A stretch of DNA of 61,497 bases, the filler included, from Dimorphilus gyrociliatus (taxonomy: Eukaryota; Animalia; Annelida): NCBI GenBank assembly GCA_904063045.1. It is 3 parts of 3 records of this genome, joined end to end, with 100 filler letters (N's around TTAATTAATTAA, not from the genome) between each part and the next. Parts side by side here need not be neighbours in the genome. Positions count along the whole stretch, not along the records: positions 1 to 18,829 come from CAJFCJ010000202.1; 2 more parts are not named here. One strand, written 5' to 3'. Position 1 is the first letter of the stretch. The number at the start of each line of letters is the position of its first letter. Position numbers and translations under genes: made by a program. Of this stretch, positions 1-18,829 are shown in pieces. The notes under the pieces were generated by a model. It searched no databases. It was not told the DNA's origin and saw nothing but the letters and a program-made list of their open reading frames with translations.

Positions 1-3000
1 TATTGTTTGTAAAAAATCAAAAAGGAAAGGTATCTATAGTAAACTGGTATTGGAATTTTTTCTCCAATTTTGTTTATTTTCTTCAATCAGCTAATATTTG
101 CCTTGAAAGTAATTCATTTATGTTTGAAAATACTTGCTATAGACTTTTTGGTATTAAAGAAGCAAAAATTATAAATAATTTTGAAGCATTTTGTCAAAAA
201 AGAAATTTATCATTAATTGATTTTCCAACAAATAAAAACATATTTTTGACATTTTATTTACAAATGTTTGGTTTTTATGTTAGTAAAAAGACTTTAAAAA
301 ATTTTAAAGAAAGTTTACAAAATAAGATTGTCTTTTCTAGTAAGAAATTCAATTGATGATCTTTTTTTTTCTTTCTTTCTATCCTCTACTTCTTAATTTA
401 GAATTGAAACAGGCCTATTATAGAAAAAGATTAGTTACATTGACAACTAGCAACTATGATTATTCATTTATATCAAAAGTTGATAAATTTCTTTACAAAC
501 ATTATAAAATGTTTGAGCAATTTGGATGGTCAAACCGTTTTAAAAAGTTAATTACATATCCAATGACTGATGAATGTTTTACTTTGTCAGTTGCGTTAAG
601 AAGGTTAGCTACCAGTTTTTATAATTTGAAATTTTTTATTACTTATTGTCTTTTATATTTTTTAGTCAAGTGTCCGGCAATATATTTTTTAAAACTAGTC
701 CTTGCAAATACAGGACAAACGTTATTGTTTGTCAAAAGCAGTATAATTTAGGTTTTAAATAAAAATATGAATAGCAAAAAGAATTATAACAAAATTTAAT
801 TTTCAGGTGAAAATCATCTTCTTTCTTCATTTCCGGTTAAGAATGAAAATGTATCTTGTTCTACAAATTTCTATTATTGTAAAAATGATAAAATCTGTGT
901 TAATTATATATACATTTGTGATGGAGTATACGACTGTCCATCACGTGATGATGAATTAGATTGCGAAGATAAAGAACCTTTGAGATATCAGTGTTTAGAG
1001 AGTGGAGAAAGAATTAGTTATACTTTACTATGCGATTTTATTATAGATTGTTCAGATGGATCGGACGAAAAATTATGTGGTAAGATAATCTGTAAATCAG
1101 CTAATCTGCTAATCCATTAATCTGCTGATGAAAAATTTTAGCTCATAAACCTTGTAATGGCTCTAAATGCCACAATCAGCAATGTATATCTTCGACTATG
1201 GTCTGCGATAATGAAATAAACTGCTTTGATTCAAGCGATGAACTTTGCAGACATGAAGAAGCAATCGATGAAAATTATAAAAAAAGTTAGATTTCTTGAA
1301 CATCGTTAATTCAAACAATGTTTTTTTTTACATTTGTTCTAAATATAGATTGTAATGAGAATTATCAAATCGCTTGCGGTCAGCTATGCTTAACTCGAGA
1401 GAAATTATGCGATTTTCAAATTGATTGCGATAGTGCTAAAGATGAAAATGGATGTTCAAAAGTTTTACAGAATACAGAGAGATATCAGTCAACAATGTCT
1501 AATAAATGTTTACTTAAGTATGATACAAGTAATAATCTATTAACAAAGATCCGTTTTCCATTTTCATTGTTGAAAAATTGCCAAAAGCATAAATGTACAA
1601 AATCTCAATATAAGTGCTATTATTCTGGATTTTGCATTAATGTTGATAGAGTTTGCGACGGAATTAACAATTGTTTGAATAATGATGATGAATTATTTTG
1701 TGGTTTAAAATTTTTGAATGATTTAAATATACTTAACAAATAGTCTCTTTTTCTCCCAAATAGACAATTTTTTACTACCAGGTTTCTTTAAATGTAGAAA
1801 TCAAAATACTTTTCTATCCGAAGATCAAATCTGCAATGGAAAGTTGGATTGCCAACTAGGCAGTGATGAGATATTTTGCACATTTCCAAAGCAGATTTAT
1901 CAAGATATTTGTAAATATCCAAATTATTTTTCAATTGATTGCAAAAATGTAGAGAATAAGAATGGAAGAGAAATAATTGAAATAGATGAAAATTTCAAAT
2001 CAATCTCCTTGTATGGAAATTTTTTAAAAGATACTTTAAATGCTACTCAAAAATTTCAAAATGTTTTTATATTAAATATTTCCTATAACAATTTAATTGA
2101 TGAATGGAATAATGTTGAATTTTCAAATCTTATCTTTTTAAATATTGTTCATACAAATTCAAGTGAATTGAATTTTATTCAGAATTCAAAATTTTCAATG
2201 TTACAAACTCTAAATCTATCGAATAATCCTATTTATAGTGTTGATATAATGACTAAAACACCAATGAATAGTTTAATTATATTGGATTTATCAACAACAA
2301 AAATTGATAGAATTGACAGGAATTTGTTAAAAAATGTAAAAAATTTAAAATTATTTAAAATTGAAAGTTGTAATTTGAATGTAATTGAAAAACTATCGTT
2401 TGAATTCGTAAAAAATCTTGAATATTTATTAATGAAAAACACCAAATTTCCAACAAATTCCATAAAATATTTTATAAATTACATGAATAAATTAAAAATA
2501 ATTGAAAATGAACATTTTCAATTGTGTTGTCTAGCTTGGAAAGTTTTGGATAAACGGATTAAATGTAATCCTCATCCAACCCATTTTCTTACCTGTATGA
2601 ATATCATTCCATCAAAAATTTTAAGAGTACTTTTCTGGATAATTGGAATTATTGGTGTTCTTGGAAATTTAATAGTAATCTTTCTAACCTGCATTTCTAA
2701 GGTTAAATCAAAAACATTTGGATTTTGCCTAGTTTTAGGAGATTTATTAACTGGAGGTTACGTAATTTCAATCGCTGTAGCAGACAGCTATTTTTCGGGA
2801 ACGACTTATTTAGAAAATGAAGAAAATTGGAGATTTAGTAATAGTTGTTCAAGTTTGGGTACAATATTAACATTTTCATTGTTATTATCAATATTTTCAA
2901 TTCTATGTTTGGCAATTGAACGTTACGAAGCAATAAGCAATCCGTTAAAAAAGCCCCGTATCGTAATATACAGGAAATTAACATTAATCACTGGAATATC

Positions 3001-4151
3001 GCTCTCTCTCTTCATTTCAATGGTTCCTCTGATCTTCCATCAAGTTGACAATATAATTTTTTTTTCAAATAGTTAAAAAATTTTCAATTGCAGAATTTTT
3101 ATTCAAAATCGACAATTTGTTTCAACATTCAAATACGAAGTGATAAAAGTCAAGGTTGGATATTTTCATTTGTTGTATTTGGAATATTATTCTGTACAAT
3201 TAGTACTATTATTGCTGTATTATATATAAAATTAATTCTACAAGTAAAAAAAACTGCAATGATTAAATATAAATCATTATCAAAGAGTATTTATGTTTTA
3301 ACAATGTCAAATGTTTTATGTTGGTTTCCAATATCAATTATGTGTGAGTAGTGTCAATAATCCATATTAAATCAATCAGTTATAATCAACATTTCTTTAA
3401 TTTAGCAATTTTATCTCATATTTTAAATTTGGACCTAAAGAATGATATCTATATTATTGTTGTCATAGCAATAATTCCATCTAATTCATTACTAAATCCC
3501 TATATATTTGGAATAAATCAATGTATTTATTTATATAGAAATCATTTGTTAAAAACTGTCAAAAAAAAGTAAAAACAAATTATTTTTTCATTTACACAAA
3601 GTTTGTCAACTTTTTGTTTTTTATTTTTGTTCAGACAAATTTACTTAAGAACTGTTACAAATGCAATTACCAGAAAATGTTTGTACTTTCTCTCTCATTC
3701 TCTGTATCTCTTTGATCTAAAATCTTCATCTGCAGATGTGACTTTCTTCAACAAAGAAATAAAAATAATTTCTAATTGTATAAATTCTCAACAACCAATG
3801 AAAAAACTCTGTATACATCCAGAGTTTTTTAAAAAATTGAGATATTTCAAGTGTTCACAGCAACTTCTTAACTTTATTGCAAATTCTCACAAAAACTCTT
3901 TGAGTTTTGTCACTGAAAATTTTGAAAATATTATTTATTATTCTGTAAGTCAATTATTCATGATACCATATTTTCATATTATCATATGTTTTTTCCCTAC
4001 CTTGTAGGAACCAGACTATTATGTTGTATGTTATAATTTTGCTATTCAAACAGATGAAACAATGAGTAATGATGTATTGAAATTTGGAAATTTTGTTAGA
4101 AAAATCCTACAGAGAAGAAGAGCCTATCTTTCAAATATGGACACTGTTTAG
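1..4151 (+). CDS. GRL101/RXFP-like LDLa-LRR-7TM receptor, paralog 1 (5' partial, multi-exon), with CTL-like domain and kinase-like C-tail
   Basis: CTL-like start (ICLESNSFMFENTCYRLF) and end (FKTSPCKYRTNVIVCQK). Six LDLa repeats, e.g. CVNYIYICDGVYDCPSRDDELDC. LRRs (LQTLNLSNNPI, LIILDLSTTKI), hinge LCCLAWK...LTCMNII, 7TM with ERY and NPYIF. GT-AG introns keep the frame through exons 3635-3678, 3736-3944 and 4008-4151. Confidence 0.88.
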
Positions 4152-4379
4152 AATTGTTCATTAATTTTGCTTTTTAGTAGATTTTTGTTCATGTAAAAAC
4201 TCTATAAGTTTTTTGGTAATCGACAAAAACAGCAGAACACCACAAATTATGATAAGCTGAACATTAAAAATCATTTTTTTTGTTATTTGTTAGCTGTTAA
4301 ATATTAGGTGCAACCATTTACTTACTCTTCGCCCATCCCATTATATAATAATCTCTTCCCACAATTCACCCTCGGAAAT

Positions 4380-4790
4380 TGTGAACTGTCCTAGACCAAT
4401 TTTTTTGTGTTAGGTGTCACTTGTTCTCAATACGACTGAAGTTGGGGACCTTTGATGGCTTATCAATAGGATTGATGTCATTCATCCTAAAGGCACTTTT
4501 GGTACTTTTTTCAGTGTGGCACCTGCACTATCTTGTTGAAAGATGTACTCCCTATTCTTTTTAACTGATATTTCTTCCATAACGGGAGGAACATCTTGCA
4601 CAATAAAACAGCTATGGGCCTCAGCATTTAACTGTTCATTAATCCTCCAATACTTCAAATCTGAAATTATGAGTACCCAAAACCATGACTTCACGGCGGC
4701 CCATATATTTTGTAACCCTAAAATGGTTTCCATATTTTTGAGGAAGTTTCCCATGGCCCCCGAGATCAACTCTTTGTCTTACTCTTTATA
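4380..4790 (-). pseudogene. Tc1/mariner transposase relic
   Basis: IWAAV...SDL..., REYIFQQDSA (cf. FQQDNA), then after a frameshift NDINPIDKPSKVPNFSRIEN (cf. WPSxSPDLNPIEN). Stops and frameshifts present. Confidence 0.7.
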
Positions 4791-5259
4791 GAAAATAGAT
4801 ATATTTTGTCTTTTCAGCTCCAACTAACTGCCTTTGAACAATCCGTATTCTCTTGTTCCAGTGATTTTTATTAATTAAAATTTTGCTAGTTGAAGATTAT
4901 ACCATCCACAAAGCTATTGCCATTAACTTTACTTTTCCTAGTTGGCTATATTTCTAGATCACGAGATCCGTTTCATCTTAACTCTAAACCTTAATGAAAA
5001 TGAGTAAAAACTTTTTCCCAATAACAATTACTAATACGCTGATTTTCTCTAATTTTTATACCTATTTATAGCATATTTTTTAAAATAAATTTACCCCATT
5101 AACCAATCGAAATAGCTATGTTTTATATATGAAAAAACTGGAAATTTATTACAGTTTCATTATGCAACGTTGAAAAATATGAAGGATTAAATGATTAATG
5201 TAAGGACTGGATAATTTCCAGATCTGGTACTTTAATTCAGAGAGGAAAAACCTCAGGAT

Positions 5260-5530
5260 TAAAACCCCAATGCAGGAAGATGGATTAACGGTCTGGCTAG
5301 CCTTACTTGCTGATAGTAGACTGTTTACATCAAGAATACCAAAGATATGTACCAAAGTATGATATCTCCATTAACTGAAAAAGAAGGCTCTACCCTTCTT
5401 TGATGAGAAAATGCCAAGTGGTTTTATTTTCAAGCAGGATAATGAAATGCACCCTGCACAAAATGGATAGAATTTTCTCTACTATTGTTTTAGTGTTGGA
5501 GAAAAATACCAAAAAATGGGTATTTTCTCC
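5260..5530 (+). pseudogene. second Tc1/mariner transposase relic
   Basis: GLTVWLAL... and ALPFFDEKMPSGFIFKQDNEMHP resemble the Tc1 VWG...FQQDNAPxH motifs; disrupted. Confidence 0.55.
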
Positions 5531-6211
5531 CATACCATAATATAAATAAATAAAAAAGTTTATGGACATAAAACGAAACATTTTGTCTTTTTGACATTTC
5601 AATTTTCACGCAATATATAGGCCAAAAGAATCACTTAATCCTATACTCTTTTTTAACCAATTTTCAGTGTCTCATATTGAAACAGTTACGGATTTTCAAT
5701 GTTTTCATACGCAAAACATAGCTGTTTTGATTAGTTATGGGAGTCAATCTAAAAATACATTTTAATCGTATAGAACATATGGATCAAAGGTAAAAATAAC
5801 AATATATTCAATATTGAAAATTTATATCCTGACAACTCCAAGTCTGATTATTCTCTCAATTAATGTTCATTATATTTGTTTGCACAATTTGATTCATGAG
5901 TCACATCAGCTATCCAACATTATTGATTCTTTCATTCTTTTTCTCTATTTTCTGATATATTGGAAAAAACAGAGAAACATACCAGCACTATTCATTGACC
6001 ATGTTAAATAAAATGAACAAAGACATTATCTATGTTTCGATTATTCTATCAATTTTCATTATATATATAAATATATATATATATTTATACTTAAGACGAT
6101 CATCTTTATAATTCAGTTCCCTTCCTACTCTCTTCGTCTCTTCTTCGTCTCTTCTTTTATCTTGCATTTCAGCTAGGAATCTTCTTGTTCTGAACAAAAT
6201 TCAACAAGATA

Positions 6212-6684
6212 ATGAGAAGATTAGAATTATGCTGTTGTATAATGAGTTTTTGGTGTACTGGGTACATTTGCAGCCAAATTGGCAAGTATTTCTGGATTTT
6301 ATTTGTTCATGAATGAGATAAAAGAAAGTTAAATGAGTAGTTTGAAATTATTTTTTGGCAGTTTGCCAGTATAGTTATGTAAGAACTACAAATTTGTTCG
6401 CAAAGTTCGATCGGATTCATGTAGATGAATGGGGCCACTACACCAAAGTCATGACAGTCGACCAGTGTAAAGAATATTGCAATAGCAACGATAAATGCCT
6501 GTTTGTATTGTTTGGTTTTGTGTGACAAATTCACCAAACTATTCAATTTCTCTTTCATCAACAGTTCATTCGATTATAAAAAGAATAAAGACGAATGTTA
6601 TCCGAATAACACCACTATGTCCACAGCCTCAAACCTTGTTTCAAGTAGCCAATTTGATTTCTACCTTAAAAATAAGCATTGCAG
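6212..6684 (+). CDS. secreted PAN/apple-domain protein (3' end uncertain, possibly a pseudogene)
   Basis: Exons 6212-6281 (MRRLELCCCIMSFWCTGYICSQI, signal-like), 6362-~6500 and ~6565-6684 splice to VCQYSYVRT...TVDQCKEYCNSNDKCLSFDYKKNKDECYPNNTTMSTASNLVSSSQFDFYLK, a PAN-type Cys pattern with CxSFDY...CY. The first intron needs a GC donor. Confidence 0.6.
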
Positions 6685-8182
6685 TAAATATTCGCTTTAG
6701 TTTTTTTTACACTCTATCATTATCATCATTATACCATTTCAAATTATTGGGTATATCTAAATAGGGAAAAAACTTTTCCTACAAGAAATAGAAGGTATAT
6801 TACTTCTTCAACTGACAAAATATTAGAAGCTAGCCTCATTGAAGAGAAGATGAATCTAGCGTTATTTTTCTAGCTCTTCATTACACCATCTTAAATATAA
6901 TTAAATTGGTAGAATTTCTCAGAACAAAAAAGTGTATAATATTTCTAGAAATAGAGTTTGCAGTTGAAATATTTATTATTACAGTCTAGACGCAATGTAA
7001 ATACAGATTAAAATTGATCTGCACATAATTCTTAATTCTTTACAACTGACAAAAGAAAATATCGTATTTTCCAATGTTTTATGGCCAAATAATAAAATGG
7101 CTGAATCTGCAAAATATAAATATATATATACATATATATAAATATGTAGTCAACGGACACATCGACTAGTCTTGGACACGTGCCAAGTTTATTTCTTATA
7201 AGACTTACATTACTATACAGTCAACATAATAAGTAATTAGTACAAAGAAAAAAGGTTTTATAAGGTGATTATTTGGTGTTATATAATTTTGATTTGCCTT
7301 ATCATCATATTAAGTCTGTACGTGAAGTCTTGGTTGAAAAACTTTAAAAGTTAGTTAGTTTGCTTCCTGTTTAGAGTTTGATTTTAGAAGGGCCTATTTT
7401 TCAACTCTTCCATTTCAACTTGTATTTGCATAAAACCTTTTTGACATCAGACAATGATATCTGTATAGGCACAGTACAGTTTTGTAAAATTTCTTGTGCT
7501 TTCTAGTTTGGTTTAAATCTTCATTTTATTGTAATCTAAAATTCCAAGGATCTAATATAATAAATTCTAGGATTCAAGAAAGATTTTCGGAATCGAACGC
7601 TTAGAATAGAGCAGAGAATCATGCAATGAAAACGGAGATGACGATACAAATGGGGCATATCATATTGATACTCATATCGGAAATTGCTTTTCTATGCTTA
7701 ACTATTTCTCTAAGTATAGGAAGGTATCAAAGAAAACTGGTAATAGCATTTGGTAAAAAGGTACTATACAATCGAAAGTAGCTCTAACTAGAAGTATAGA
7801 TATTAGAAATATCGCAGCGAGAAGAGGAAGTAGTATTATTTTTTTCACGATTAATAAAGTTGTACTATTATGATACAGTGATGTTATTAGACCCTTACGT
7901 GACACGTGACTTCTACAACAAAAATCAATTGTTAATATATTAAAGTGCTGTAAAAAGAAAATGTTCTATTAAAAACATCACTAATCCAAAATATAATCCG
8001 GTCATTCAACTATCTTTCCGTCCTCCCCTTTCTAATTGCTTTACGCCTATGTATAAGTATTCACTATCACTAAATCATTAGCTAATTAAAAATGATTAAG
8101 ATTAAAAAATTAATAATTATTTATGAATATAAAAACAAAATTAGAACATTTAAAGAATTGTCAGTCAGACATACAATTCAAA

Positions 8183-10634
8183 ATGAGAATATTTGAATTT
8201 TTGATAATTTTCAATAGTTTCTTATTCAGTAAAAAACTTTTGAATGCAGAAAAATTTTCAGGTAATGAAGTAATAAATTGTTCATTTCAAATATGTTCTG
8301 TCTTTTTGTTATACTAATCAACAGGTGGATATCTTATTGATGTTGCAAGTCAAAGTAACGGAGCAAGTTGTAACGCTTCCGGTGCTTTACCAGATTTTGA
8401 ATATTATACTTACCATTGTGAAAATGCATTGGAACCTTTCTGGAAAAATATTAATGGTTGGGTAACTCCATGTTCAAATTCATACTGTACCACCGAATGG
8501 ATTGATATTACCTTTAAACAACAATATCACGTGATAGAACTTTGTGTTTATCAAGGAATTGGTAATTTAGAGAGAAGAGTTGGAAAAATTTCCATAGTGA
8601 TGAACGCAAAAAGTACAATAATTCAACTAAACAATACCATCACGTGCTTTTTATTAGAAGAGCATTTTGGTTTGAACAGTTCAAGTTTAAAGATAAATAT
8701 TCACGAGATAAAGGTTGCAGCATCAAACATTGCTTTAGGCCAAATTTCAGCTTTTGCAATTGAATATGGTTAATAATTTCTTCTTTAGTTTTAGGTTTTT
8801 AAGCTTAATTTATTTATAGCCCCTATTTTATTAGCCTATGGATATATATACATATATTGTTATATAGGTGGTTCATTAAACGAATACGTTGAATACGATA
8901 ACATTGCTCAACTCGAATTTGGAGCCACTTGTAATCAATCATCCTACCAAACGGGAATGGATTGCTCTAACGCAATTGATTGGACTTTTTACCCAAATTG
9001 GATAGCCGACTGTTCAAATGTTCTATTATGCATTGATCAATACATCTCGATAAATTTTGCAATAGCTGCACGGCCAAAATACTTTTGTTTGGCGAATAGG
9101 TATAATCATAGGCCTATTTACTTAATTTTTTTATGACAAGGGTTAAATGAGGAAAAACTTAGTAAACAGATAGTAGACTTTGGGAATAGGTTAAAAGTTT
9201 TCCAAAGGTCAAGGGTCATTTGGAGGTGGAGGGGAGGGTTTGTATTTTATTTCTTTTAACTGTTTTCTTTTTTTTTATTCAAGAATGGGAGGTTCAAATT
9301 TTATAAAATTAATTGAAACGAAATGGTACTCTGGACATACTCAACTAATAAATTTACATGATAATGGCATTCGATATTGCTTTAATTATACAAATGAACC
9401 TAATATCGAATCTGGATTAACATTTACAATTAAAGATTTTTATACCGGAAGTAATCTAGGATTGAGAAGTGTTCATGTTTTTTCAAAAAGTATTCAAAAC
9501 ATTACTATTTTTTTTGTTCTATTATATTCTGTTTTTCTTTTAAAGGAACATTTGGACGAGTTTATTCTATTCAATCAGAAAATTACGTCATCTATTATGT
9601 AGCGGAAAAATTTCAAAAACAATTCAAATCATTAAAATTCAAAATTCTAGGCAAAGAAACGAATCAATCCAATGACTGCTCATCATTTATAATCAGTTTT
9701 AAAGATGAACTTTCTATACAATTTTCAATAAAAATTGATATAAAGGAAAACAGTACAAAAGACAATTTGATAATTGAATTATTTAAGCCTACTTTAATTG
9801 ACAAGATATTCAAGTTTCAAATGAAATTAATTAGTTGTGAATTTTGGACTGAATACTGGATTCAAATTTTAAATGGCGAATTACAATTTGGTTCCGGAAG
9901 AGCTTATGGTGTGAATATTTTAGCTAAAGTAACGGGAAACATTTCATTAAATTTAAAGGAAATTTTATTGAGAAACAACCAAGCTGACATCATAAATCAT
10001 TTTCAAATAACTGATATAGGTTTTTTAATTTAACCCTAACCCTAACCCTTTTTTAGCACAGCAATTCTTTCTAAACCAGATTCAATTCAATATTATTATC
10101 TAATCCCGACCCCCAACCTAATCCACTCTCTTTGCCCTTTACCCTATCCTAATGATATTATAATAATTTCTATTCTCCTCCTCTTTTTCTTCTACAGAGG
10201 GCCAAAAGATTTCTGTACCGCATATGAATCAATGCCAAATGACCCATTTCTATTCTACAATCGACAAATCATTTGACACCTGCTCAAGAATTCAAACTGA
10301 AATTTTAATAATTAATTTTGAATTTCTGAACAATAGAAATGATAATGGAATTGACAATTTTTTTATTATCGTTTCCTTTAAGAAGCTCCATGAAAATATT
10401 GAAAAGTTTCTAGTAAATGCTCTCATTCCCTACGAAAATGACGCGAATAACAGGATCATGTTGAAGTTATGCCAATTAAAAATTATAATTTATAAACCAG
10501 TATTCATATTTTATAAATTTAAATGCATTGTTAAAAATGTTCAAAATATTAAAATGAACAAATTTTTTATTCATATCAATGTCAACTCAAATGATTTGAA
10601 TAATATTTCAATTTGTGAAATTTTATTCAAATAA
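8183..10634 (+). CDS. secreted multi-domain protein: 2x discoidin/F5-8C-like, FAMeT (Methyltransf_FA)-like, C-terminal beta-sandwich
   Basis: Signal exon MRIFEFLIIFNSFLFSKKLLNA. Repeats DVASQSNGASCNASG...CENA...W...EWIDITF and NIAQLEFGATCNQSS...CSNAID...W. LISCEFWTEYWIQILNGELQFGSG is FAMeT-like. Ends in ISICEILF. In-frame GT-AG splicing was checked for most junctions. Confidence 0.7.
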
Positions 10635-10727
10635 AAAGTTTCTTTGTCTAAAAGGGTAAGGTCAAGGTCAAGGTCAAAGCTAGGGTCAAGATTTTATTAA
10701 AATTTAAAAACAAGATTATTTTTTCAA

Positions 10728-13700
10728 TTAATTTTTATTAAATAAAACTTTTGTCATTAAAATTTTACGAGTAAAATTTCCAATTTTTAAAATATCATTT
10801 TTTTCATTCTTTAAATTCGTTTTGGTAAAATATTCATAAATAATATAATATTGTAAATTATTATCAACCTTTGAGTAATTTATAATATACCGGAAGTAAG
10901 TATAAATTGTTACTAAATATAGAAATTTTTATTTATACCTTAACATAGATGCAGTCTATGAACTCAATGCAAATTGGTGAAAGTCGATTAACGTGTGCAA
11001 TTGAAATACCTTTACATATTGCTTTAAGGCATTTAATATAATTGAAATTTTCATATAATAGGCCTATACGATAGTTTAATTTAGTTAATAATTGTCTATG
11101 TTCCAATCTTAGGAAGTATTTGGTATGTTCTTCATTAAAGAATGTTAAAACTGGTAGAAGGGAATGAATATTTTAATGAAATTTTAAAAAAAACTTGTAA
11201 TTATAAGATTTTACTTTCAGTAAAAATCAAATCTTTTGCACAATTAATAATTTTTTCTCTAAAGAAAAAAAAGAAAATTTTTGACCTTGACCTCTTTTGA
11301 AGTTGAAAAAAAAACTTAACTGTCTTTCTCTTTGTTTTTGTTTTCTTAATTGACAAATATGAATGAATTCCCGAGTTGAAAATATAAATGGATTTAAAAG
11401 ACAATTTAATGGAATAATAAAAATAAAAATGGCGACATAGTGATCATTTTTCAAATGAATATTCATAATTTCCGATAGGAAAGCTTTTAAAAAAAGGGAG
11501 AAAAAATATTTATAATATTCTCTTTCTCACACCAAAACATCTTACATAGAGTTGATATTGGAAACCAACATAACAGATTAGATATAATAATTAGATAAAT
11601 ACTCTTTGAAATTCTTTTCTTCCTATTTGTCTTTGACATAGAAATAGTGAAAAAAGATTGTTTAATCAACTTAATAATTTTAACATATAGAATTGAAATT
11701 ATTAAATTATTCATCAATAATATAATACCAAAAGTTGTAAATGAATATTGCCAACCATCCGATTTATCTGTTCTAATCGGTATGTTAAAACATATTGTTG
11801 ATTTTTTATAATATTTCTTAAAATAGAATAAAAAAGTTTTTTTTTTAAAAAACAAAAATGTTCAAGCTTTTTTTCTTTTTAATTTTTTTTTTACTTGAAA
11901 TATGATTAGAGGTAGAATTGAAAATGTTAAACAAGATATTAGTAGGGTAATCAGTGCCGTGTATCTATATTTTATCATAAACGGAAGTGTTAAAGGACTC
12001 GATATCGATTCGAAGCGTTCAATCGTTATGAACAGTAGCATAAATGTTGAAAATAGTAGTGAAAATGATAAGATTGTTCCTAAAATTGAGCAGAAAGTAC
12101 TCTCTCTCCAAGATTCTTCTTCGAAAATGTACCTTTCACCTGAAAAGTGTACATCTATTACGGCTGTTATCAATACGTACACTGCTGTTAGACAATCTCC
12201 AACGTTCAAGCTTAATCTATACAGTTTTGCAGCTGCCTTTGTCCTCATTATTAATACGAATGACGTAGCATTAGCTAAAATACCGCAAATTCCAAATATC
12301 CAAAAAATAATTTTTAAGAAATTATATGGAATAATATTATGACAAGTTACGAAAACTGGTAGTTTTGGTTTACAAGTGATTGTTTGTCTCAACATTTTCC
12401 AAGCCAGACAACACAATTGATAACTTCCACTTTCAATTTCACTTAAATTTATCATATTACTGATAATATCATTTAAATAGTTTACTGAAATATGAGTACT
12501 TGTAGCTATAAAATGATGTACATTTCTTAAAGAATTGAATGCATTTCGTTCAATAAAATTTAAAAAACATTTTTGAAACTTTAAAATTTTTAACGATTTA
12601 AAAAATTGAAAATTTTTCTTTTCTAAATTCTGAATTTTTGTTAATGAAAAATCTAATAATAAAATATTTCGAATTTCAAATTTATTCAAAATATTCAATG
12701 TCGTAAGGGGATTTTTTGAAATGTCTAAAAATTGTAGTAAAGACAACCTTGACCTTGAAATGAAATTCATATTTGTGATATTGTTATTCGAAAAATTGAT
12801 AAGAATAATATTTGGTATTGAAATACGATTATCTGAATTTGTAAGTAAAAAATTCTTATGAATATTTAAAATATGTAAATTAAGGTGTAATTTTGATATT
12901 TGAAATTTAAAATTTCCAACTAAAACGGCTTTTTTAACGGTTTCTTCAATTTGAAAATGAGTATTTTTTTGTCTAAAAGTACATTGAATTTCGTAAAGAG
13001 AAGTTTCATGAATACAAGAAAGATTATTATTATTGTTCTTGAATTGAGTTTTTAGAATTGAACAAAAAATTTCGTCACTTCCGTCTTGACAATCAACTTT
13101 GCTATTACATAACTGCTCGTTTGATAGGAATATCTTCTCAATTCTACACTTAAAAAACCCTTTTGGAACAGTGTGAAAATCTTCTATTTTGAGGGAAGTA
13201 TAAAAATTTTATTTTGCAGTTGTTTCCAGTTTTGTAACGGAAAATATATATATATATATATATACCGCAATTCATTTCATCATCTCCGTACAGGCACTGA
13301 TTTAAACCGTCACAGATAAGATTAATTGGAATGCAGTAGCCTTCGTAGTAACATTTATATTCAGATTTTGCGCATGTTTTATTTGCGCATGCGTACAATT
13401 CGGAAAATGGATATTGAATTTTTGTTAAAAAATTATTCATTGTATCATAGTTTATAGTACAGTAATTACTATTCAAATGGTTTTCATACCAGTTATTATT
13501 GTAATAGTTATTACAATGAGTTTCGTCCGTTTTGTCTTTGCAGTCGACATTAAAATCGCATCGTTTTTCGTTAGTTATACACATATCATTGCAGCTCCAT
13601 TGTGTTTTTTCATTGCAGTCTATAATTTTAAATGTACAGTAAATTGTAGAGTATTGTAGTTAGGGTTAACTTAACCCCAACGCCTAAATTGTTTTCCCTA

Positions 13701-16700
13701 CTGTCTTGGAATCTTTCGTCAATAGCATTGCCGTTCAGGCAAAGTTCGTCTGTGTAATCTATACAATTTCTTTCATTATCGCATACTTTATTTTCGGGTA
13801 TACATTGTTTATTAAGGCATTCTCTACTAATGGAAAAATAATAGGCTTTGAAATTTGATATGTAGAAAGGTAATTTCAATACCTGGAATTCAGGTTACAG
13901 TCTTCAAAAGCTTTAATTGATATATGAAAATATTATATTCTCTAACCCCTCTCCCTCTCTCTATCTCTTTCATCTCTAAATATGGGATTTAAGAGAAAAA
14001 AACATCCATAAAAATGACAATAATTAAATGAAGTATATCTTATCTAATCTGGATAGAAAAATGAATGTTTCCTTCTCAAAAATATCCCAAGTTATCTTTT
14101 ACTTACAGCAATAAATTTCGTCAGAATGATCTTGGCAGTCAGGAAAATGATCACAAATTAAGGAATAGCTAATTCTTTCCTTTGAAGTTAGACATTCAAA
14201 CATTTCTCTTTTATGAAGTTTATTATCGTAGGATTTGTCGACTGTACCGCAATTTATTTCGTCATCACCAGATTTACAGTCGAATATTCCATCGCATAGA
14301 TAAACGGAATTAATACAATAACCGTCTTGTTTACATTCGAAGTCTCTTTTTGAACAGTTAATATTTTGAATGGGAAGATAAAGTGAAGAGTATTTACTGA
14401 TGGATTGAATTTTCTTTTCTATAGATTGAGAGAAGAAAGAGTGAAAAAGAATGAGAGAGAGAGAGAGAAAACAACCTAAAAGTCTTTGACATATAAACAC
14501 ACTACTCTTCCTCTTACAAGATATAATTTCAACATAAATATGAATTATTCTAGAAAAATATTTAAATTTAAATAAGAAATTACGTTAGTTTGTCAAATTT
14601 AAATTAATACGGTTTTCTTTTTACGTAAGTTAAAAAACAATCATTTTCAACCTTGTTCGGTAATATTTGTAAAAATTCAGATTTGTCTAATAAAATATCA
14701 ATAATAGATTCTTCATAAATATATCGAGAAGGTGATAAGAAATGCTCCGCAAAAGGAATAAATTCTCTATTCTGATTGCCAGTGGTTACTGATATTTTTC
14801 TATTTTTATACTTTTTCTCAATAAATCCTTTATAAAAAACAACCATGATAGAAAACAGCCATTTTGTTGGTGTTTGTTTTGTTTTTAAGCATTTTCTATT
14901 TTTACTAGTTCAAATATATTATATTTACTGGAAAAGACGTTGAATCGATATCTTTTTCCTTGATTAATTTCACCAGTCATTAATTGTAGATATTCAACTA
15001 TAAAATGTTTTTTAAATGTTGAAAATGCTAATGACGTCATATTATTCATTCTGCAAATATCTTCTTGTTGCCAAATTTCTCTTTGTTGTTTAACAGTGAA
15101 AATCTTATAACATAAATTTTCAAAATTAATCATATTTTCACCAATACAATCAAGCTTTTCACTAGTTTTATAACATTTTATTGTTAATTTTCCAAATGTA
15201 CTCAAAATATTTCTGTACGTAAAATAATTTCAAATTTTTAAAAAACAAACATTTCAAATTTTTTTTTTGACAGACTTTCTATTAATTTGACAATTGAGAA
15301 CATTTGTTTCGCCGTTTGAACAGTTCAAGTTGGATATAAATGTATAATAATAGTTAAATCTTACTTTTGGATCATAGATAAATGTTAAACGTTTCGAAAT
15401 GAATATTTCACCAGTTGTAAAACCGAAATATTTACATAATAGAGTAATGTCAATTGAATCGAAAGTTCGAATTAGATAATGAATTTTTTGTAATACAACT
15501 CTAACATATCCAATATAAAATGTATAGTTATGACTCTGACCGTAAAGTAGATTTTGGTGTGTATTTATCAAATAGAATTTTGATTCTGATTGTCACGTGA
15601 CCGATTATAACCAATTCCTACAGTTTGTAAATATACTTACCTGGCATGTAGCTGTAATCAACGCAGGTAGGTTTGTAATAATTATAAAATTCTTTATCAT
15701 TACGAGTTGTATTAATCAATTGGAGATAGCATCCAAAAAATACATCATTTTCTCTAGATGAACATCCTCTTAGAGCTATTGGCATAATCTGAGGAAGAGA
15801 AGTAAAAAAGGGAAAATAATTATCACCAGATGGAATCTATGATTTTGAAAAATATACCTTTCTTGTTGAAAATTGCTGTTTAACTTGAACTTTTGGTCCA
15901 ATTGTTTTACCAAGATATTTTTGACAAAAAAAGAAATTTGCATATGTATATGGTATGGTTCTATGAAACACCAATTGTCTATAACCGTATAATTTTGAAT
16001 GAATTAAAAACTCAAGCCTAAAGAACGTGTATGTTAAATCGCGAGAAGAATATTCCTTTTTAGTTTTTATTTTTACTTCTGAATGATGATTGGACAATAT
16101 AAATTTATACTTGAAATTCAAAATTAGAAACGGACCGTCTATTTCAAAATAGGAGCATATTATAATTTTGGTGAAATTTCTCCATTGTTGAGTAGTGTCA
16201 TTTAACGTAACGAAACCGTTTTTGTTTAATTTTAAGTATTTATTCGAATATCTATTTAATTTTAATTTAAAATTAATAGCTAATTCGTTCTTTCTACACA
16301 ACGTTTTCCTTTCTTCTTCCATTGAAAATGTTTTAAACAATTGGTTATTTTCGTATAAAATTAACAAATAGGTTGATGGTTTCATTTTCATTGCTAAGAA
16401 AACTAATAAATGATGTACTTTAAAGTAATGACAGTATTATTTGAAAATATTATAAACTCTTACAGGTTGAATCATTTTTAAAACATTTTAAAAAAACACC
16501 AATCGATGTCACATGACCAGTTTTCCTGCTGAAGAAACAGAAATAAAATTTAAGGACAATAGGAGAAAGTAATCAATGAAATTGGTGTTTTTCATATTAC
16601 ACTTACAATTGGCAACAAGGAAATTTGCTGAGTAGTCTCAATGAAAGATTTTTAGAATTAATGCTCAAATATTCAATATGTGAAAAATTTGAATAATTAA

Positions 16701-16926
16701 TTAATAATCTCTTGCAAAAGAAAGATTTTAAATATTCAAATTTAACAGTTAATGTTTTACTAAAGAATAATCTTTGGTAGACTGTTCCATTAAAAATTCC
16801 ATGAATAGAATATTTTTTTAAAATATTATTATCATTTATGATTTTAAAATTTAAATTATTGAAATTGTTGATTAAACAATTGTTGAAATAAGGTAAGAAT
16901 AGAATAAAGATGATTTTCAACACCAT
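10728..16926 (-). CDS. GRL101/RXFP-like receptor, paralog 2: SP, SRCR-like, CTL-like, 6x LDLa, LRR, 7TM, kinase-like tail
   Basis: Signal MVLKIIFILFLPYFNNC. SRCR-like LLCKYFGFTTG...LNCSNGETNVLNCQ. CTL-like CIGENMINFENLCYKIF. Six LDLa, LRRs, hinge LCCLAWK, ERF and NPFIF. Tail exons 11258-11215, 11150-10939 and 10868-10728. Confidence 0.85.
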
Positions 16927-17485
16927 TTTCAAAAGTAAAACTAACTGATATTTTATTTCGAGTTGACATTAAGTGATTAATTTGAGAGAAAAAAAAGGAA
17001 TGCGTTACCTAATTACGCAATATAGAGTTATAAATAGCTCATTTAAAGGGAAATGAAATATTGTGTTGTTAAATACACCCAAGATTGGATAAATCATGTT
17101 TGAAGAAAAAATTCTACATTATTTTGTTCAGATTTTTCATATGTTATTTCAGTTTTGTGGTTGTACCCCGACCCAACTCTAGACCTTGTTTTAAACACTT
17201 CATTGTTCCTAACCCTAATTACAAATGTTTCAAACATTGATATTTTAAAGAGGCTGTATTAAATACAAAGCTAAATCTATGTTAAAGTTACAACAATACC
17301 ATAATTTAATGTGTATTACATCAGTGTTATATTTAGATTTAAAATATATAGCAGTGTTTGAATAACAATAAAGGTATATGATAAAGCCATTTCTCCAGTG
17401 ATATACCTCTGAATAGAGAAAAAAAAACACAACAATTTGTAACCATAGACAACAAGACTATTTAGATATTTGTACAATAACTGTA

Positions 17486-18502
17486 TTATGTAACAGTAGA
17501 GTGATAGCTAACAATGCTATTTTTATTAAAAAGATGTCTAAATGTTAAAAAATTGATGACAGTAAGAATTTGGTTTCTAAAAGAAGGAAAGATAGAGATG
17601 TAAATTACAGTGTTAAAAAAGCTATTGAAATTTGCTAGCCAAGTTAGAAAATATCTTTGAGTTTGTGTTTTTTGTTTAAAATTCTTACTAAACAAACTAC
17701 CAACAGCTAAAATACTATAAGGCATCCATAATGTATAAAATACTATAATTGATAAAATTAATAGTTTAAATATCCTCAAATTTCTTTTTGAAAGTGTTTT
17801 TATTGCCTGATTCATTGGACTTATTCTGGATTTTTTACTTTTCAAAAAGGTTATAATCTTTAATCCAGAAAATAGTAGAATTGCAGATGTTAAAAATGGT
17901 CCAGCAAAGAGGTAACAGCTTGTATTAAAACTAATCTTATAATCTGGAGCGCATATAATCTCAGATACCAAAAAGCTGTAATCTTCCAATTCAAATATCT
18001 TTAACTCAGGTAAACAGCTAAAAGTATACAGGAAAATCCATAAAAGTATCAGTATGATGAGAATCTTCCTTTGTGTCATGATAGTTGTATACCTGAAGTA
18101 AACATGAAATATAAAATTAAGCCTATAAATGCATTTAGAAAACACATGCTTATCATAATAATTTACAGCTAAATATCTATCAAAAGCTATTATTGCAATT
18201 GTCCAAAGAGACAGCATACCACTTGTTGTTAGAATTATACCAGAAATTTGACAAACTACATATCCATATTGATATTTACCGGAAACTGATGATGTAAATG
18301 ACACCATTAATGATACAACACTTATTTTAAAATCAGCAATAGATGTATTTATTAAGAGAATTTTTGTCATTTTTGGTATTTTTTTAACAATTGGTAAAGT
18401 TAATAGAGCAGCTATTGTTGAGAAAAATGATAGAAATACAGGAATTCCAACTATAATACTCCTTAAAGGATTTGAAATTGGATGTTCCAATGCAGAATTC
18501 AT
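17486..18502 (-). CDS. orphan class A (rhodopsin-like) GPCR, not an opsin
   Basis: Seven hydrophobic helices, TM2 SIADF, TM3 Cys and DRY, ECL2 Cys, TM6 WMPY, TM7 NSFFNTVIY. Asn sits at the opsin Lys296-equivalent position. Probable in-frame ~57-nt intron after DRYLAVNYYDK. Confidence 0.85.
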   Translation of the reverse strand: MNSALEHPISNPLRSIIVGIPVFLSFFSTIAALLTLPIVKKIPKMTKILLINTSIADFKISVVSLMVSFTSSVSGKYQYGYVVCQISGIILTTSGMLSLWTIAIIAFDRYLAVNYYDKHVFSKCIYRLNFIFHVYFRYTTIMTQRKILIILILLWIFLYTFSCLPELKIFELEDYSFLVSEIICAPDYKISFNTSCYLFAGPFLTSAILLFSGLKIITFLKSKKSRISPMNQAIKTLSKRNLRIFKLLILSIIVFYTLWMPYSILAVGSLFSKNFKQKTQTQRYFLTWLANFNSFFNTVIYISIFPSFRNQILTVINFLTFRHLFNKNSIVSYHSTVT

Positions 18503-18829
18503 GTTGATGAATATATTTTATCATACTGACAATAAATAAATATATCAACATTATATAATATATCAAAAAACATTGATCATCTACCCGTTTCCATAGAAAA
18601 GAATAAAATACTGCAATAAAACTTCGTATAGACAAATGCTATTTTCATTAAATCGCAGTTTTATTATTTATAGATATCATCAAGTAAGGTTGATTAACTG
18701 AATAATTGACTTTTGCTGTATTTTAGACATGTTTTTTGTATGAGTTGATAACTCTTGTCATTTAACTGTTTTAGTTAAAAGCAGACATTTTGAATAATTT
18801 TAAATTCTTCGTTCAGTTTGCTATGTAAA

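Follow-up and report, generated by a model that had tools for sequence, protein, structure and literature searches.

The genome of the annelid Dimorphilus gyrociliatus raises the question of what follows the seventh transmembrane helix (TM7) of a set of receptors, and whether it has anything to do with protein kinases. Positions 1 to 18,829 of the window (the whole stretch of 61,497 nucleotides (nt) that was analysed, composed of three joined parts) correspond to contig C202 (CAJFCJ010000202.1) of a 77.9 Mb assembly of 349 contigs (GCA_904063045.1), and this piece carries two convergent paralogous genes for receptors of the LGR type (G protein-coupled receptors that contain leucine-rich repeats). 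A first-pass annotation had described three minus-strand exons at the end of the second gene (paralog 2) as a kinase-like tail shared with the first gene (paralog 1), maintained by purifying selection and absent from the open reading frame (ORF) track. Our analysis suggests that the coding sequence of an LGR-type G protein-coupled receptor (GPCR) probably ends with these exons, and that they encode a folded, non-catalytic core of kinase origin, ~130 residues long, placed after helix 8.

The structure of the three exons proved to be as first described, including their translations: the borders are GT..AG, the phases chain (exon 1 as 1 + 42 + 1 nt, exon 2 as 2 + 210 nt and exon 3 as 47 codons with the stop), and the frame closes at a TAA codon that has AATAAA immediately ahead of it (Table 1). 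A phase-2 donor at 11321 would join the tail to the exon encoding TM7 and helix 8 of paralog 2, and the 62-nt intron that results is of matching size to those elsewhere in this gene (62-78 nt). This donor was picked as its phase fits exon 1 and as paralog 1 has an equal phase-2 donor (3568/GTAAAA) at the end of its own TM7 exon, ahead of its three tail exons. The two tails, which are homologous as proposed, have the same layout, starting with a 44-nt first exon, and have the motif ND[IV]LK[IF]GNF.RKIL in common; in both genes the splice phases fit reading from the TM7 exon through to the stop. With a cut-off of 60 amino acids (aa), an ORF listing shows no more of exon 2 than a 57-aa fragment and nothing of exon 3, which explains why the tail is missing from the ORF track.

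Searching the whole ~78 Mb assembly with a tail profile (E ≤ 0.001) revealed at least 144 tail copies, nearly all of them without internal stops. The same genome gave 16 translated matches to exon 2 and 41 to exon 3, numbers well beyond chance, as well as 150 matches to the TM7 exon, and at least 130 scored relatives, among 440 candidates, of the exon that encodes the leucine-rich repeats (LRRs) and TM1-3. At every locus compared, the TM7 match is followed after 300-600 nt by the tail, in the same orientation; of the 40 LGR loci that scored best, 27 have a detectable same-strand tail downstream. A phase-0 GT..AG intron occupies the identical exon 2/3 site in ~30 paralogs (~50-100 nt, with two of ~230-300 nt), while five natural copies lack it (L075:2223-2711 and L061:2368-2859, both on the minus strand, P0001, P0002 and P0032). 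Tail exon 1 of paralog 2 is collinear, without gaps, with the L075 copy, which also crosses the exon 1/2 junction; as far as sequence comparison goes, the intron-less copies confirm the predicted joins between the tail exons. When the five closest copies were compared in pairs, dN/dS was 0.15-0.5 with dS saturated; for one dN/dS statistic the codon columns of exons 2 and 3 were pooled. Taken together, the open frames of well over 100 copies, the conserved site and phase of the intron, the intron-less joins and the dN/dS values argue that the tail is almost certainly coding, under purifying selection and part of the receptor gene.

The last of these points has a competitor, in which the tail exons lie outside the receptor mRNA, as a separate small gene or as an optional alternative 3′ end that was co-duplicated with the receptor. 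Splicing between receptor and tail is predicted from DNA, another donor type is commoner at these loci than the GTTAAG at 11321, and were this donor unused the TM7 frame would reach an in-frame stop of its own at 11227-11229, all of which would suit such an arrangement. We nevertheless consider it highly doubtful, as the tail contains no conserved start codon and exon 1 begins mid-codon in both window paralogs, while order, strand and spacing after TM7 are maintained among paralogs down to 30% identity. In one paralog (L076:2387-2896, minus strand) a single open frame leads from TM7 into exon 2, and tandem duplication alone would not preserve the splice phases.

The genomic setting of the tail copies showed some further features. 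Receptors that combine low-density lipoprotein receptor class A (LDLa) modules, LRRs and seven transmembrane helices (7TM) lie mostly on small contigs (~C34 and above), often as tandem or inverted pairs, and ordinary kinases lie almost wholly on large contigs. Locus L055 (G000:C120:68000-77999) contains, at ~3660-7120, a perfect palindromic duplication with a decayed receptor fragment and a tail copy whose exon 2/3 intron is read through in frame, giving a 186-aa ORF per arm; a 140-aa ORF at its centre (5020-5442, minus strand) was assigned to no family. At locus L019 (G000:C80) the exon 2/3 intron measures ~300 nt versus ~65 nt, and the insert, which is markedly GC-richer, is possibly a small repeat element.

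The resemblance to kinases was sought at the sequence level by scanning 31 members of the tail family against Pfam one at a time. Pkinase (PF00069) was the sole Pfam family matched by at least two of these members. Two scans together gave four sequences that matched it in two collinear blocks, in which exon 2 aligned to profile positions 70-129, from the hinge to the catalytic loop (L047, E 8.7e-5; L064, E 0.002), and exon 3 to positions 158-199, from the P+1/APE segment to αF (P0026 and P0005; E 0.012 and 0.017). Profile searches of the PDB sequences were headed by CLK4 (E 0.087) and, once the alignment had been improved, by NEK1 (E 0.01). Both kinases align at αE and the catalytic loop and again from APE to αF, with the family His falling on the αE His and the family D-x4-G on αF of NEK1 (SDIWALG); the comparison with αE originally drawn from the pattern I..G...H is thus upheld by Pkinase, CLK4 and NEK1, all of which align there. 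Read against the family alignment (A1), exon 2 would comprise β4/β5, the hinge, αD and αE with its near-invariant His, followed by a degenerate catalytic loop, which in paralog 2 reads LSPIC where kinases have HRDLKPxN. Exon 3 would comprise a P+1/APE relic (YYIIYE), the D-x4-G of αF (NDILKIG) and a basic end beginning RKIL. At least 90% of the alignment rows have the His and the Gly, Asp-x4-Gly is kept, and the spacing from Glu to Asp (APE to αF) is 13 residues versus 12 in NEK1. Among language-model neighbours, every one that has a family has Pkinase (scores 0.89-0.91), which serves as a lead only. The segment ND[IV]LK.GNF was also considered as a relic of the DFG motif, and this assignment was rejected for αF on the strength of the D-x4-G spacing and of the Pfam and NEK1 alignments.

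Structures were predicted with AlphaFold for two different natural intron-less copies, standing in for the tail of paralog 2. The first model had a predicted local distance difference test score (pLDDT) of 83.3 and a predicted template modelling score (pTM) of 0.73, and the second a pLDDT of 88.7 and a pTM of 0.79, with all five models of the second run above 81. Exon 1 forms the first modelled helix (2-19), at a position like that of kinase αC, and exon 3 forms a long final helix in both models. Among the matches listed by Foldseek (~45 per model) all were kinases, with probabilities up to 1.00. An exhaustive comparison with 48,161 representative chains gave a top 50 made up entirely of kinase folds for both models (Z 7.1-10.5), among them Rad53 (Z 10.5), the pseudokinase of RNase L (Z 10.2 and 9.6) and BPK1 (Z 8.7; 2.0 Å over 91 residues).

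A number of observations weigh against this reading. The best Pkinase score, 22.5 bits, is below the gathering score of 31.7 bits, so that none of the matches reaches the threshold, and the tail exons of paralog 2 scanned alone against Pfam gave no match. The exon 3 part of both input alignments has few rows, and its placements compete, the models assigning it to β8 and the hidden Markov model alignments to APE. In the first AlphaFold run confidence was low for all but one of the five models, the Foldseek E-values were 0.04-0.2, Z values of 7-10 are moderately above the usual best Z of unmatched models, for which 7-8 is common, and the abundance of kinases in the PDB inflates their share of weak matches. 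No complete kinase was found beside an LGR (PF07714, 142 of 514 candidates scored), so that there is no intermediate form. The splice junctions, moreover, are predicted from DNA comparison, and the docking or pairing role that we infer below is one on which we are evenly divided.

These points could be taken to mean that the tail, although real and conserved, is a lineage-specific α/β fold whose likeness to kinases stems from convergence, database abundance and AlphaFold bias. Sub-threshold Pkinase scores, PDB E-values of 0.01-0.09, Foldseek E-values above 0.01 and the ordinary size of Z 7-8 would all accord with this, as would the result of running profile A1 in HMMER against 1.84 billion proteins, which was only 33 short ORF fragments, with no annotated protein, whether full-length receptor or other, and no true kinase (the five fragments looked up were Logan-only singletons, from raw-read assemblies). 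What makes an origin outside the kinases unlikely is the agreement of several comparisons: four independent sequences match one Pfam model in two collinear segments while no other family recurs, the conserved His, the Asp-x4-Gly and the distance of 13 residues from Glu to Asp agree with kinase subdomains VIa, VIII and IX, two different sequences each gave 50 kinase folds among their 50 top structural matches, and the language-model neighbours concur. We judge it likely that the tail descends from a protein kinase.

The description of the tail as kinase-like therefore needs to be divided: it probably holds for the fold, as both predicted structures have only kinase folds among their 50 top matches, and fails for a kinase domain, as what is present is a truncated relic that has neither catalytic motifs nor N-lobe strands. 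The Pkinase matches begin at about profile position 70, and the domain opens with the αC-like helix after helix 8, leaving no space for β1-β3, the glycine loop or the VAIK lysine. The HRD aspartate is not conserved; the family consensus at the catalytic loop is H...LS..G......IY, with L/F-S-x-x-G there and mostly Gly in the place of Asp. Pkinase positions 130-157, which span β8, DFG and the activation loop, are without counterpart, and the protein stops ~15 residues beyond the αF glycine. No extra DFG-type exon was found in the long exon 2/3 gaps on contigs C80, C60, C5 and C34, which are plain introns, and none of 153 PF07714 matches, nearly all on large contigs, lies downstream of an LGR. 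Because the N-lobe strands, the HRD aspartate, DFG and the activation loop are absent, catalysis by the tail appears very unlikely. The residues retained, namely the αE His and the αF Asp and Gly, are by their positions structural rather than chemical, and for the tail, which on this evidence does not belong to the kinase family as an enzyme, kinase-derived remnant or mini-pseudokinase is the most fitting name. It could still be imagined that the tail works as half a kinase, binding nucleotide or catalysing when a second protein, or the tail of another receptor, completes it; the one argument for this is the resemblance in fold, and the sequence is compatible with completion by a dimer; yet the glycine loop, the VAIK lysine, a conserved HRD aspartate and DFG are missing throughout the family and the longer exon 2/3 gaps hold no additional exon, which makes this extremely improbable.

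In the explanation that we propose, the tail would derive from a eukaryotic protein-kinase domain, probably by way of an ancestral receptor fused to a kinase that was then still complete, and no more than the structural centre of that domain would have been retained: the αC-like helix, β4-β5, αD, αE, the catalytic-loop position, the P+1/APE relic and αF. The β1-β3 strands with the glycine loop and lysine, the HRD aspartate, β8, DFG, the activation loop and everything past αF would have been lost. The product would most likely be a non-catalytic module at the cytoplasmic face of the receptor, because the best-kept residues are those that hold the C-lobe together rather than do chemistry. Such a module might dock a common intracellular partner, or pair receptors, for a large and fast-diverging family. 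We lean slightly towards the broader view that D. gyrociliatus has an LGR family of more than 140 genes with a new minimal kinase-derived domain, the relic of an LGR-kinase fusion, acting as a non-catalytic signalling or docking module.

The host gene itself is, as judged from its predicted domains, a type C-like LGR of the class A GPCRs, which combines LDLa modules, LRRs and a rhodopsin-family 7TM. The C202 piece has eukaryotic character, with a GC content of 22-33% and introns of ~60-80 nt. Paralog 1, on the plus strand, begins outside the contig's left end and finishes at 4151, and paralog 2, on the minus strand, runs from ~16.9 kb to 10728. With the Pfam cut-off for 7tm_1 at 30.5 bits, paralog 2 scored just above it in the TM4-6 exon (31.1 bits) and just below it in the TM1-3 exon (28.6 bits, E 1.2e-6), and the TM1-3 exon of paralog 1 also exceeded it (41.6 bits); an E/DRY-like IERF motif and NPFIF are readable in the 7TM exons of paralog 2. 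The LRRs sit immediately ahead of TM1; LRR_8 matched both paralogs under the Pfam cut-off (E 0.017 for paralog 2 and 6.9e-6 for paralog 1), and Ldl_recept_a matched over its cut-off in exons 13150-13584 and 14099-14500 (E 3e-13 to 5e-13). When the LRR-TM1-3 exon was compared with the PDB using phmmer, RXFP1 was the best match (E 1.7e-16), with an alignment running from the LRRs through TM3, and the next solved relatives were LHCGR, FSHR and TSHR. A word search with a 448-aa LGR frame gave four Logan matches at 31-39% identity. Further upstream in paralog 2, the ectodomain exons at 14885-15571 (minus strand) have weak matches to Chordopox_A33R (C-type-lectin-like, E 0.002) and SRCR (E 0.034), and the ectodomain may be more composite than that of a canonical type C LGR.

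Fusions of a 7TM with a C-terminal kinase, GPCR-TKL/K and GPCR-TK, are known from acanthoecid choanoflagellates and sponges, and none of the protein-kinase GPCR fusions has been functionally characterised (PMC12716839); GPCR-bigrams, including GPCR-PIPK/RpkA, occur in oomycetes and amoebozoans (PMC6033456, PMC5784254, PMC3206951). The D. gyrociliatus receptors would be like these fusions in having a kinase-type domain C-terminal to a 7TM, in one polypeptide as predicted here, and are like them in forming large lineage-specific families. They differ in that the fusions have a complete, Pfam-recognisable kinase or lipid-kinase domain rather than a ~130-residue core, and a 7TM that does not cluster with the rhodopsin/LGR type, whereas here an LGR-type 7TM is joined to an LDLa and LRR ectodomain. 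With the type C LGRs (RXFP1/RXFP2 and Drosophila Lgr3/4) they share LDLa, the LRR ectodomain and the rhodopsin-type 7TM, and they depart from them in having several LDLa modules, weakly C-type-lectin-like and SRCR-like upstream exons, a kinase-like tail and well over 100 copies. Known LGRs have a short, unstructured C-terminal tail and few copies per genome. Regulatory pseudokinases such as RNase L, PAN3, PEAK3, IRAK3, NFR5 and the kinase-homology domain of receptor guanylyl cyclases, several of which are among the best structural matches of the tail models, likewise keep the fold with degenerate catalytic residues; they have, however, kept both lobes, the N-lobe included, and in most cases a pocket for nucleotide, whereas the tail has no β1-β3 and ends after αF. 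Rio1/Rio2 and Bud32 (KEOPS), also among the structural matches, are similar in having no classical activation loop and a shortened C-lobe, but unlike the tail they are active ATPases or kinases with complete N-lobes and catalytic residues, and the sequence signal of the tail points to the ordinary Pkinase model and not to the RIO families.

Our literature searches turned up neither a large expansion of LGRs nor an LGR that ends in a kinase-like tail, and this would be the first case found of a kinase-type tail on an LGR/rhodopsin-type receptor, in which a kinase was cut to an αE-αF core and then kept under selection in more than 100 paralogs. If true, it would connect class A GPCRs with the GPCR-kinase fusions described only recently, and no natural piece of a kinase that folds by itself would be known to be smaller. 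It raises the questions of how small a stable unit of the kinase fold can be and of what a receptor gains from a dead C-terminal kinase core, be it docking, dimerisation or trafficking. Gene models of this family that end with the in-frame stop codon following helix 8 would lack ~130 residues.

Table 1. Exons and introns of the two receptor genes in window coordinates. A slash marks an exon border.
Feature	Position	Strand	Length (nt)	Details
Paralog 1, tail exon 1	3635..3678	+	44	AG/ACAAAT ... AAAAT/GTTTGT; phases equal to those of paralog 2
Paralog 1, tail exon 2	3736..3944	+	209	Family profile E 3e-19
Paralog 1, tail exon 3	4008..4151	+	144	Includes TAG stop; family profile E 6.5e-17
Paralog 2, tail exon 3	10728..10868	-	141	Includes TAA stop (10730-10728); preceded by ...CAAAG
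Paralog 2, intron between tail exons 2 and 3	10869..10938	-	70	Phase 0; GTATAA...CAAAG
Paralog 2, tail exon 2	10939..11150	-	212	Preceded by ...ACCAG, followed by GTATAA
Paralog 2, intron between tail exons 1 and 2	11151..11214	-	64	GTAAAA...ACCAG
Paralog 2, tail exon 1	11215..11258	-	44	Includes EKIINCAKDLIFTE; preceded by ...TTTAG, followed by GTAAAA
Paralog 2, intron between TM7 exon and tail exon 1	11259..11320	-	62	GT..AG; predicted
Paralog 2, TM7 (NPFIF) and helix 8 exon	11321..11483	-		Three-frame read; predicted phase-2 end CA/GTTAAG
Paralog 2, TM4-TM6 exon	11546..11816	-		Pfam 7tm_1 E 2.2e-7, profile positions 131-242; borders inferred from AG/AAATAT, TAT/GTAAGA and frame
Paralog 2, large exon (open frame)	11895..13208	-		LDLa module, LRRs and TM1-TM3; ends ...IIFQ, then GTAAAA donor; Pfam 7tm_1, LRR_8; 5′ border provisional

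Three other regions of the C202 piece are of note. Just past the end of paralog 1, at 4200-5400, the GC content rises to ~33% and ORFs overlap on both strands; one frame, with ..IFQQDSA.., recalls Tc1/mariner transposases, without support from Pfam. Between the receptor genes, at 8318-10631, long open frames of 113-192 aa follow one another on the plus strand; none had a Pfam match, and together they may be an unrelated multi-exon gene. An intron-less rhodopsin-type GPCR of 338 aa is encoded at 17486-18502 on the minus strand (Pfam 7tm_1, E 2e-25); a word search of 5.8 billion proteins found no relative of it at E 1e-10, and its language-model neighbours are mostly GPCR clusters from cnidarians, ctenophores and sponges.

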